A stretch of DNA of 64,000 nucleotides from the NCBI GenBank assembly GCA_002269645.1, contig NIVC01000103.1:865393-929392 (forward strand). Direction: 5' to 3'. The DNA comes from Macrostomum lignano (Eukaryota). The notes beneath the pieces were generated by a model. That model did no database searches. It saw nothing but the letters and a program-made list of their open reading frames with translations, and had not been told where the DNA came from. The position numbers and the translations under genes were made by a program. Positions 10,301 to 13,300 of the stretch are shown here, in pieces. How positions within the stretch are numbered: the stretch's first letter is position 1; each line of letters starts with the position of its first letter.

Positions 10301-13300
10301 AGACTGAGTTGTCAGGAGACTGGGTTGTCAGGAGACTGGGGTGTCAGGAGAGACTGAGTTGTCAGGAGACTGGGTTGTCAGGAGACTGGGGTGTCAGGAG
10401 AGACTGAGTTGTCAGGAGACTGGGTTGTCAGGAGACTGGGGTGTCAGGAGAGACTGAGTTGTCAGGAGACTGGGTTGTCAGGAGACTGGGGTGTCAGGAG
10501 AGACTGAGTTGTCAGGAGACTGGGTTGTCAGGAGACTGGGGTGTCAGGAGAGACTGAGTTGTCAGGAGACTGGGTTGTCAGGAGAGACTGAGTTGTCAGG
10601 AGACTGGGGTGTCAGGAGAGACTGAGTTGTCAGGAGACTGGGTTGTCAGGAGACTGGGGTGTCATGAGAGACTGAGTTGTCAGGAGACTGGGTTGTCAGG
10701 AGACTGGGGTGTCAGGAGAGACTGAGTTGTCAGGAGACTGGGTTGTCAGGAGACTGGGGTGTCAGGAGAGACTGGGTTGTCAGGAGACTGGGTTGTCAGG
10801 AGACTGGGGTGTCAGGAGAGACTGAGTTGTCAGGAGACTGGGTTGTCAGGAGAGACTGAGTTGTCAGGAGACTGGGGTGTCAGGAGAGACTGAGTTGTCA
10901 GGAGACTGGGGTGTCAGGAGAGACTGAGTTGTCAGGAGACTGGGGTGTCAGGAGAGACTGAGTTGTCAGGAGACTGGGGTGTCAGGAGATTGGGGTGTCA
11001 GAAGAGACTGAGTTGTCAGGAGACTGGGTTGTCAGGAGACTGGGGTGCCAGGAGAGACTGAGTTGTCAGGAGAGACTGGGTTGTCAGGAGAGACTGGGTT
11101 GTCAGGAGAGACTGGGTTGTCAGGAGAGACTGGGTTGTCAGGAGACTGGGGTGTCAGGAGAGACTGGGTTGTCAGGAGACTGGGGTGTCAGGAGAGACTG
11201 GGTTGTCAGGAGAGACTGGGTTGTCAGGAGAGACTGGGTTGTCAGGAGAGACTGGGTTGTCAGGAGAGACTGAGTTGTCAGGAGAGACTGGGGTGTCAGG
11301 AGGGACTGGGGTGTCAGTGTCAGGAGGGACTGGGTTGTCAAGAGAGACTGGGGTGTCAGGAGGGACTGGGGTGTCAGTGTCAGGAGGGACTGGGTTGTCA
11401 AGAGAGACTGGGGTGTCAGGAGGGACTGGGGTGTCAGGAGGGACTGGGCTGTCAAAAGAGACTGGGGTGTCAGGAGAGACTGAGTTGTCAGGAGAGACTG
11501 GGTTGTCAGGAGAGACTGGGTTGTCAGGAGAGACTGGGTTGTCAAGAGAGACTGGGTTGTCAGGAGAGACTGAGTTGTCAGGAGAGACTGAGTTGTCAGG
11601 AGAGACTGGGTTGTCAGGAGAGACTGGGTTGTCAAGAGAGACTGGGTTGTCAGGAGAGACTGAGTTGTCAGGAGAGACTGGGTTGTCAAGAGAGACTGGG
11701 TTGTCAGGAGAGACTGGGTTGTCAAGAGAGACTGGGTTGTCAGGAGAGACTGAGTTGTCAGGAGAGACTGGGGTGTCAGGAGAGACTGGGTTGTCAGGAG
11801 AGACTGAGTTGTCAGGAGAGACTGGGTTGTCAGGAGAGACTGGGTTGTCAGGAGAGACTGAGTTGTCAGGAGAGACTGGGGTGTCAGGAGGGACTGGGGT
11901 GTCAGTGTCAGGAGAGACTGGGTTGTCAAGAGAGACTGGGGTGTCAGGAGGGACTGGGGTGTCAGGAGGGACTGGGCTGTCAAGAGAGACTGGGGTGTCA
12001 GGAGAGACTGGGGTGTCCGGAGCGACTGGGGTGTTAGAAGAGACAGTGAGATGCCGAGAGAGACAGTGAGGTGTCAGGAGGATGTCAGGTGCTACAATAG
12101 GGTGTCAGGAGGATGTCAGATGCTACAATAGGGTGTCATGAGGATGTCAGGTGCTAAAATAGGGTGTCATGAGGATGTCAGGTGCTACAATAGGGTGTCA
12201 GGAAGATGTCAGGTGCTACAATAGGGTGTCATGAGGATGTCAAATGCTACAATAGGGTGTCATGAGGATGTCAGGTGCTACAATAGGGTGTCAGGAGGAT
12301 GTCAGATGCTACAATAGGGTGTCAAGAGGATGTCAGATGCTACAATATGGTGTCATGAGGATGTCAGGTGCTAAAATAGTGTGTCATGAGGATGTCAGGT
12401 GCTACAATAGGGTGTCAGGAGGATGTCAGATGCTACAATAGGGTGTCAGGAGGATGTCAGATGCTACAATAGGGTGTCAGGAGGATGTCAGATGCTACAA
12501 TAGGGTGTCAGGAGGATGTCAGATGCTACAATAGGGTGTCAGGAGGATGTCAGATGCTACAATAGGGTGTCATGAGGATGTCAGGTGCTACAATAGGGTG
12601 TCAGGAGGATGTCAGATGCTACAATAGGGCGTCAGGAAGATGTCAGGTGCTACAATAGGGTGTCATAAGGATGTCAGGTGCTACAATAGGGTGTCAAAGA
12701 AGCACGATAGGATCTTACGCGGCAGTGGGTCGTCAAAGTACACCCGAATATCGTGGCAGCCACCGACTGTGGCAAGGTTTGGATGAATATCAAAATTGCC
12801 AAGTTTAGCTTGCTGTCCAAAAATGTCATAGAAATCATAGAGCACAATTATTTTACAAATCTCAGAACAGAAACAATATCAAGAACTTACTAGAATCGGT
12901 GATGACATCCGAGGTCACAATGGCATTGGTAGGCTGGTGCTGGTCATTATAATCAGTATAAAACACCTGGAAGACCAATCGTATTGACTTCAAATTCCGA
13001 GAATTGTACCTGGCTTCATCCATGTTTTCTGTGGGAAAAAGTTGACTGAATCAGGTTAAATCAAAGCGACAAGCATGACTCAGAAGCAGGCACACGCTCA
13101 CACAGGGTGTACAGCGTTTTTTTAATTGATATTTATGAGAAGCCCAAACAGGAGCAACACAAATGAGAAGAGCCGCAACTCACTGTTGAACGGATTGAAG
13201 TTGATCTTCTTCCGATTTTCGATTGCCTCCTGCAGCTTGGCGCCTTTGGTTGACACGCAGACCAGCGACACTTTCTCTAGGCTGGGGAGATGGCAGCGAA

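Follow-up and report, generated by a model that had tools for sequence, protein, structure and literature searches.

What becomes of an exon that a gene fusion has left in two copies? The question arises in the flatworm Macrostomum lignano, where Rel-homology-domain genes form a tandem cluster on the minus strand of a 64,000-nucleotide (nt) stretch of contig NIVC01000103.1 (assembly Mlig_3_7, GCA_002269645.1). This whole stretch is referred to as the window; window position p corresponds to record position 865392+p and no N occurs within it. With coordinates falling along the minus strand, the genes follow the order R4 (PAA90851.1), R3 (PAA90850.1), R2 (PAA90849.1), a chimera and R1. The chimera combines R1 exons 1-4 with R2 exons 4-7 and is the annotated GenBank gene Mlig000125g4 (PAA90848.1, "BOX15_Mlig000125g4, partial"). 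An earlier, sequence-only reading had concluded that the first of its two exons 4 has lost its acceptor, is skipped and is decaying next to conserved exons. We found that the acceptor loss is real and private to the chimera. However, the deposited gene model keeps part of the exon through a cryptic AG, and most of the differences taken for decay belong to an inherited haplotype. We give this overall reading a probability of roughly 0.68. The earlier observation is thus confirmed whilst its interpretation is partly supported, as to the private acceptor loss and the annotated chimera, but mostly does not hold.

Acceptor loss in the R1-type exon 4

The R1-type and R2-type versions of exon 4 in the chimera have equal length and phase (Table 1). 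Before the first of them the acceptor AG has become TG (T at 12819, G at 12818), whereas AG is kept before the paralogous exon 4 of R1 (1837-1739). All other splice sites of the chimera are GT-AG and its reading frame is intact. With the remnant exon skipped, the open reading frame (ORF) would encode 344 amino acids (aa), and with the whole exon included it continues in frame to 377 aa. The exon itself has an open frame and an intact GT donor, with no stop, frameshift or indel.

As had been reported, exon 4 differs from that of the neighbouring R1 by five replacements (V>A, I>N, Q>L, S>G and W>R) and two synonymous changes (GAT>GAC and CCG>CCA), and exon 3 by a single synonymous difference in 138 nt. 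Q>L is a two-base change (CAA>CTT), giving eight nucleotide differences in exon 4 rather than seven. The Trp lost through W>R had been called invariant; it is kept in nine of ten aligned family members, and so is highly conserved but not fully invariant. The first AG downstream of the lost site, at +5, does lead to an immediate stop (A/CA AGC TAA). Two more AGs inside exon 4, at +9 and +51, had been overlooked, and both are in frame.

The deposited gene model uses a cryptic acceptor

By exact protein look-up, PAA90848.1 (354 aa; gene span 18353-7375) matched the chimera with exon 3 joined to the AG at 12768-12767. The deposited length fits neither skipping nor full inclusion, indicating the cryptic-AG splice. 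Exact look-up in the protein collection returned no skipped form (344, 338 or 333 aa), no fully included form (377 aa) and no full-length cryptic form (360 or 349 aa). Pyrimidines occupy 12/18 positions upstream of the cryptic acceptor, within the range of the real acceptors of the chimera gene (10-14/18). Only with the duplication in place are the junctions from exon 3 to 12766 and from 12719 to 8510 colinear.

The GenBank annotation of the assembly rests on RNA-seq (STAR, StringTie, TACO) and on de novo transcripts mapped with BLAT; TransDecoder was used to call the ORFs (PMC5730564). The chimera is an annotated gene in this transcript-based annotation, in agreement with the sequence-only reading. 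Skipping of the exon was not supported: the deposited model holds 12766-12719 in frame via another acceptor, and no skipped protein is on record. Inclusion through another acceptor had been named beforehand as the outcome that would refute skipping, and it is what PAA90848.1 displays. Compared with a pseudo-exon, the R1-type exon 4 has the loss of a splice site but is not absent from the deposited model, as only its first 51 nt are excluded from the GenBank coding sequence (CDS). The deposited isoform is presumably the main one in vivo.

A further AG has been lost at the 5' end of the gene. A chimera-private CAG>CTG change at 18355 (minus strand), in codon 6 of exon 1, removes the AG directly before the annotated 5' end of R1-type mRNAs. 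PAA91494.1, on contig NIVC01000085.1, starts at 16281, and PAA90848.1 likewise starts at codon 7. The change at 18355 may represent a lost spliced-leader acceptor; otherwise, reads from paralogues may have fixed where the chimera model begins.

Most differences in exon 4 are inherited

To place each difference, four-way anchored alignments were made of the window's R1, the chimera and the R1 copies on NIVC01000085.1 (L001) and NIVC01000278.1 (L003); whole-block megablast was swamped by minisatellite matches. Over exons 2-4 (a 611-nt stretch, 13307-12697), nearly all differences between R1 and the chimera separate R1 and L001 from the chimera and L003. The chimera and L003 have in common a 27-nt deletion in intron 3, nearly all intron 3 substitutions, the replacements V>A, Q>L and S>G, and both synonymous changes. 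Yet R1 of L003 (PAA86480.1) is intact and includes the full exon 4 via a normal AG, with the A, L and G residues in place. The exon-specific relaxation proposed earlier is therefore not borne out, since three of the five replacements, both synonymous changes and nearly all of the intron 3 differences are found in an intact gene. The shared differences are either older than the chimera or independent of it.

Only four sites in the stretch are private to the chimera: 12888 (intron 3 donor +3, harmless), 12819 (the acceptor), 12796 (I>N, A on the minus strand) and 12746 (W>R, C on the minus strand). The chimera is the only one of the four copies without the AG, confirming that the acceptor loss is its own. 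In exon 1 (18371-18037), by contrast with exons 2-4, the window's R1 and the chimera group together against L001 and L003 at 11 sites. This switch of genealogy along the gene points to exchange between copies, by recombination or gene conversion.

Divergence is regional and gives little sign of selection

The conserved exons next to exon 4 had been taken as a sign of selection on the chimera. We found that the contrast between exons 3 and 4 is regional and rejected selection as its explanation. Between the two duplication units, intron 2 (0/155) is as conserved as the adjacent exon 3 (1/138), and exons 6-7 differ at 1/282 sites. Divergence reaches 26% in intron 3 (mafft, 19/73 aligned) and 8% in the remnant exon 4, whilst the retained exons 4' and 5 differ from those of the neighbouring R2 by 14% and 22%. 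The step from exon 3 to exon 4 is a boundary between exchanged tracts, in a haplotype or conversion mosaic, and is no evidence of selection.

A formal test of exon 4 against exons 1-3, which the sequence-only reading had called for, gave a divided answer. The ratio of non-synonymous to synonymous changes (N:S) did not differ significantly (5:2 vs 4:8, Fisher p = 0.17) but the density of non-synonymous changes did (p = 0.005). Between the chimera and the neighbouring R1, the proportions of non-synonymous and synonymous differences (pN and pS) were 0.071 and 0.116 in exon 4, and 0.009 and 0.064 in exons 1-3. The haplotype structure confounds this contrast between exon 4 and exons 1-3. When only private changes were counted, the remnant exon 4 with its AG had 3/101. 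The retained exons had fewer per site (6/1032, p = 0.04), whilst non-coding DNA did not differ significantly from the remnant (34/1898, p = 0.43). The private coding changes in the remnant are two replacements and no synonymous change. The intact exon 4 of L003 R1 has the same private density (3/99, two replacements). Relaxed constraint on the remnant is at most weakly hinted at, by two or three events, although the remnant would now be expected to be under little constraint.

A separate diverged tract is private to R2 of the window. It runs from 21637 to ~21000 (minus strand), from exon 4 through intron 4 and exon 5 into the first part of intron 5, with 13+14+17+47 sites at which this R2 stands alone, the three other copies being alike (pS 0.33, pN 0.14; flanks <=2%). 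Among the window's other paralogues no close donor was found (35-50% identical). The tract is suggestive of an old haplotype or of ectopic conversion.

Probable origin of the chimera by tandem duplication

Self-comparison and boundary sequence delimited a tandem duplication of two units, the smaller of which spans ~8.3 kb (units A and B in Table 1). The junction is exact. The break is non-homologous and joins R1 intron 4 to R2 intron 3, and because it is out of register exon 4 is present twice in the hybrid. Both parents, R2 and R1, were kept intact beside the chimera. In the other two copies of the cluster, on L001 and L003, R2 is followed directly by R1, with no duplication and no chimera. 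The duplication is thus confined to contig NIVC01000103.1 amongst the three copies in the assembly, and it is probably real.

We propose the following course. The chimera would have been born by the non-homologous tandem duplication from R1 intron 4 to R2 intron 3, its exon 2-4 part carrying the haplotype also present in L003 R1 and the neighbouring R1 carrying that of NIVC01000085.1. The private A>T would then have destroyed the canonical 3' splice site of the R1-type exon 4. Exon 3 would be joined instead to the cryptic AG 51 nt within the exon, and the first 51 nt, with I>N, would now be intron. The last 48 nt, with W>R, would be translated as 16 extra residues between the DNA-binding and dimerisation domains, followed by the full R2-type exon 4.

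The units have also been modified by insertions. In unit A, ~1.1 kb at ~5602-4500, between the 3' end of the chimera and the R1 promoter, have no counterpart in unit B. The retrotransposon in intron 1 of the chimera (14182-17731) sits inside a 28-mer minisatellite and is absent from unit A and from both other contigs.

Protein consequence

In the protein alignment, the 16-residue insertion between the two domains is unique to PAA90848.1. An AlphaFold2 model gave both domains a predicted local distance difference test (pLDDT) score of 80-90, with a confident beta-sandwich at residues 208-304; internally the score drops below 50 only at residues 186-203, where the insert lies. Foldseek aligned ~314 columns to two-domain RelA/p65 structures at ~1e-16. 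On this model, the remnant may act as a tolerated extra linker or longer hinge. It is a highly speculative further step to suppose that the insert was adopted as the longer hinge of a new Rel-type factor, with W>R and the transfer of I>N to the intron being favoured and preventing competition between the spare beta-strand and the real one. If true, this would be a new protein segment caught in the act of arising from a redundant exon, in a recently polyploid flatworm whose cluster copies exchange sequence.

Alternative explanations

Several points weigh against partial retention of the exon through the cryptic AG. Its transcript support is second-hand, via the annotation, and comes from a sole deposited isoform. 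The model's 5' end, at codon 7, lies where the chimera has no AG, unlike the three R1 copies (the window's own and those on the two other contigs), so that some features of the model may come from paralogue reads. Statements on constraint depend on two or three substitutions. The low pLDDT of the remnant arises partly because one aligned sequence alone has the insert, and the alignment behind the model is shallow. The exon could instead be skipped entirely, as a neutrally decaying pseudo-exon in a chimera otherwise under purifying selection. The loss of the canonical acceptor, the stop that follows the next AG and the clean 344-aa ORF of the skipped form all fit this, as do the removal of a nearly invariant Trp and a private density that exceeds that of the retained exons and matches that of non-coding DNA. 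A skipping isoform could also have been removed from the annotation by the TACO isoform filter (--isoform-frac 0.75). Yet 48 nt of the exon are present in the sole model deposited, and no skipped protein is on record. Five of the seven codon changes cited for decay are inherited haplotype, the exon has kept its donor and has no stop, frameshift or indel, its private density is matched in the intact L003 exon, and exon 3 is conserved along with intron 2. We consider full skipping unlikely.

An artefact of assembly would do away with the chimera itself. Units A and B would then be haplotypes or homeologues of one locus misplaced in tandem, the TG copy a variant R1 allele, and the gene model stitched from multi-mapping reads. 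Mlig_3_7 is highly redundant, with 180-312 Mb duplicated (PMC5730564), and M. lignano has been described as a hidden polyploid. In line with such an error, the units carry different pre-existing haplotypes in exons 2-4, each common to another contig, the junction adjoins a minisatellite, and the 5' end of the model falls at a site without AG in the chimera copy. However, the unit exists in four versions, against just three copies each of the flanking R3, R4 and Mlig028098, and the four versions are all distinct (~93-95% identical over kilobases). At 11 sites in exon 1, units A and B side with each other and not with the other two contigs. Two unique, non-homologous positions meet at the junction without N, a join for which an overlap-based assembly needs reads, and the deposited splice from R1 exon 4 to R2 exon 4 is colinear only in tandem. 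An artefact is thus quite improbable. A simpler error would be a wrong T at 12819 with the exon spliced normally, as this is a single base in a long-read assembly. Substitutions are, however, the rarer class of error in such assemblies, two further private substitutions lie within 75 nt, and the deposited model avoids the canonical site in favour of the AG at +51, which is not expected from reads with the full exon. A base-call error is very improbable.

Comparison with known systems

The event falls into known classes, namely hybrid genes from tandem duplication, use of a cryptic 3' splice site after loss of an AG, and tandem homologous exons, and is an ordinary case of these. The chimera resembles hybrid genes formed by unequal exchange or tandem duplication of adjacent paralogues, such as anti-Lepore-type globin and Drosophila chimeric genes, in that R2 upstream and R1 downstream flank the hybrid. 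Likewise, its promoter and 5' part stem from one parent and its 3' part from the second, and the arrangement is polymorphic among copies of the locus. Unlike in a clean in-register fusion, its break is non-homologous and out of register, and exon 4 is carried twice.

Activation of cryptic 3' splice sites after loss of the canonical AG is well known from human disease alleles. As in those alleles, the canonical AG of the chimera is mutated and its role passes to a downstream in-frame AG with a pyrimidine-rich tract, which shortens the exon. The difference is that a full paralogous exon follows and makes the shortened one redundant, so that 16 residues are gained rather than lost. Usage in the chimera is also known from annotation rather than read counts. 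Tandem homologous exons with mutually exclusive splicing offer a third parallel, as the chimera has two serial homologous exons that agree in length (99 nt) and phase and have 42% amino-acid identity. However, this pair comes from two fused genes and not from duplication of a single exon, its first member has no acceptor AG, and the sole deposited isoform has part of the first exon 4 and all of the second.

The locus is a small example of the aftermath of an out-of-register gene fusion, in which a redundant exon is deprived of its splice site and stays partly in the mRNA by way of a cryptic one. The gene model was already in GenBank and no long-standing question is opened. There is nonetheless a caution for redundant, recently polyploid genomes: when a duplicate is compared only with its neighbour, inherited haplotype differences can be mistaken for decay, and other copies of the locus are the outgroup needed. 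Users of M. lignano should be aware that Mlig000125g4 is a private R1/R2 hybrid and that the Rel-like cluster is a mosaic of exchanged tracts.

The Rel-homology gene cluster

The Pfam profile RHD_DNA_bind (PF00554) matched the chimera at 65.2 bits and R2 at 51.7 bits, in both cases over the full profile and above the gathering cut-off of 27. No match to Pfam RHD_dimer was found at E<=1 in the cluster proteins searched. The best PDB matches, by sequence and by fold, were RelB, p65 and c-Rel (~1e-16 with the family profile). A HMMER search with the contiguous chimera exon 1 retrieved near-identical M. lignano proteins, whereas a word-indexed search with R1 exons 2-4 (111 aa) gave no hit and seems insensitive to these proteins. 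In all cluster members the recognition loop reads YHRFRYE(T/S/K)E; the canonical Cys and Gly of the RxxRxRYxCEG motif are absent, making this a variant loop.

The cluster proteins are similar to Rel/NF-kB factors (RelA, RelB, c-Rel, Dorsal/Gambif1) in their N-terminal Rel homology domain, predicted Ig-like second domain and basic KRKR motif. They differ in being short (~340 aa), in having no detected ankyrin or transactivation regions, in the variant loop (HRFRYETE, vs RFRYxCEG) and in forming a fast-evolving tandem cluster. A survey reported no p50/p105 in Platyhelminthes (PMC11432056). Our literature search found no paper on Rel-homology genes of Macrostomum.

R1 of the window (L004 24303-28743) is intact, with seven exons, canonical splice sites and a 334-aa product, and extends ~390 nt past the window start. 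Between the chimera (PAA90848.1) and Mlig028098g1 (PAA90847.1), GenBank has no protein for it. The transcriptional-unit prefix Mlig000125 is common to R3, R2 and the chimera. In the older M. lignano predictions P0004 (R4-R3) and P0006 (R3-R2), the C-terminus of one cluster gene is joined to the next gene, or an intron is retained. These predictions suggest read-through transcription of the cluster.

Table 1. Features of the chimera, its parents and the duplication, in window coordinates
Feature	Position	Strand	Remarks
Chimera exon 1	18371-18037	minus	R1-type; ATG at 18371; GenBank CDS start 18353 = codon 7
Chimera exon 2	13281-13184	minus	R1-type
Chimera exon 3	13028-12891	minus	R1-type; 138 nt
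Former 3' splice site, now TG	12818-12819	minus	A>T at 12819 private to chimera; four-way alignment column A/T/A/A
Chimera remnant exon 4	12817-12719	minus	R1-type; 99 nt, 32 full codons, phase 1/1; canonical acceptor lost
Cryptic AG acceptor	12767-12768	minus	51 nt inside exon, ccttgccacAG/TCGG; splice needed to reproduce PAA90848.1
Coding remnant	12719-12766	minus	48 nt = 16 in-frame extra residues in PAA90848.1; includes W>R site 12746
Chimera exon 4'	8510-8412	minus	R2-type; 99 nt, phase 1/1; normal AG acceptor
Chimera exon 5	8339-8257	minus	R2-type; 83 nt; recognised by comparison with R3
Chimera exon 6	7739-7547	minus	R2-type
Chimera exon 7	7463-7375	minus	R2-type; KRKR nuclear-localisation motif and stop codon
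Parental gene R2 (Mlig000125g2, PAA90849.1)	20546-24445	minus	7 exons, 340 aa; model identical to deposited protein
R1 exons 1-4	4051-3717, 2328-2231, 2075-1938, 1837-1739	minus	Inside duplication unit A
R1 exons 5 and 6	609-527, 444-273	minus	Outside duplicated unit; R1 exon 7 ~310 nt beyond window start
Duplication unit A	727-9001	minus	R2-type 3' half used by chimera and 5' half of R1
Duplication unit B	9002-22525	minus	R1-type 5' half of chimera and 3' half of R2; enlarged by minisatellite expansion and retrotransposon
Duplication junction	9001/9002		R2 intron 3 unique sequence (= 22525) abuts first unit of 18-mer minisatellite of R1 intron 4 (= 727)
Non-LTR (long terminal repeat) retrotransposon	14182-17731	plus	Antisense in chimera intron 1; three ORF pieces with endonuclease, reverse transcriptase and RNase H

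The window is rich in minisatellites. Arrays at 735-1716, 2355-3662, 9007-12696, 13308-14167 and 21732-22376 make up most of the intron sequence of the cluster genes. Their units are 18, 31, 28 and 20-22 nt long and copy number differs several-fold between the duplication units (38 vs 176 copies of the 18-mer). Upstream of the cluster, on the minus strand, lie an exon encoding a tyrosine-kinase catalytic domain (46135-46617) and a Ty3/gypsy-type pol ORF with reverse transcriptase, RNase H and integrase (51381-55442).

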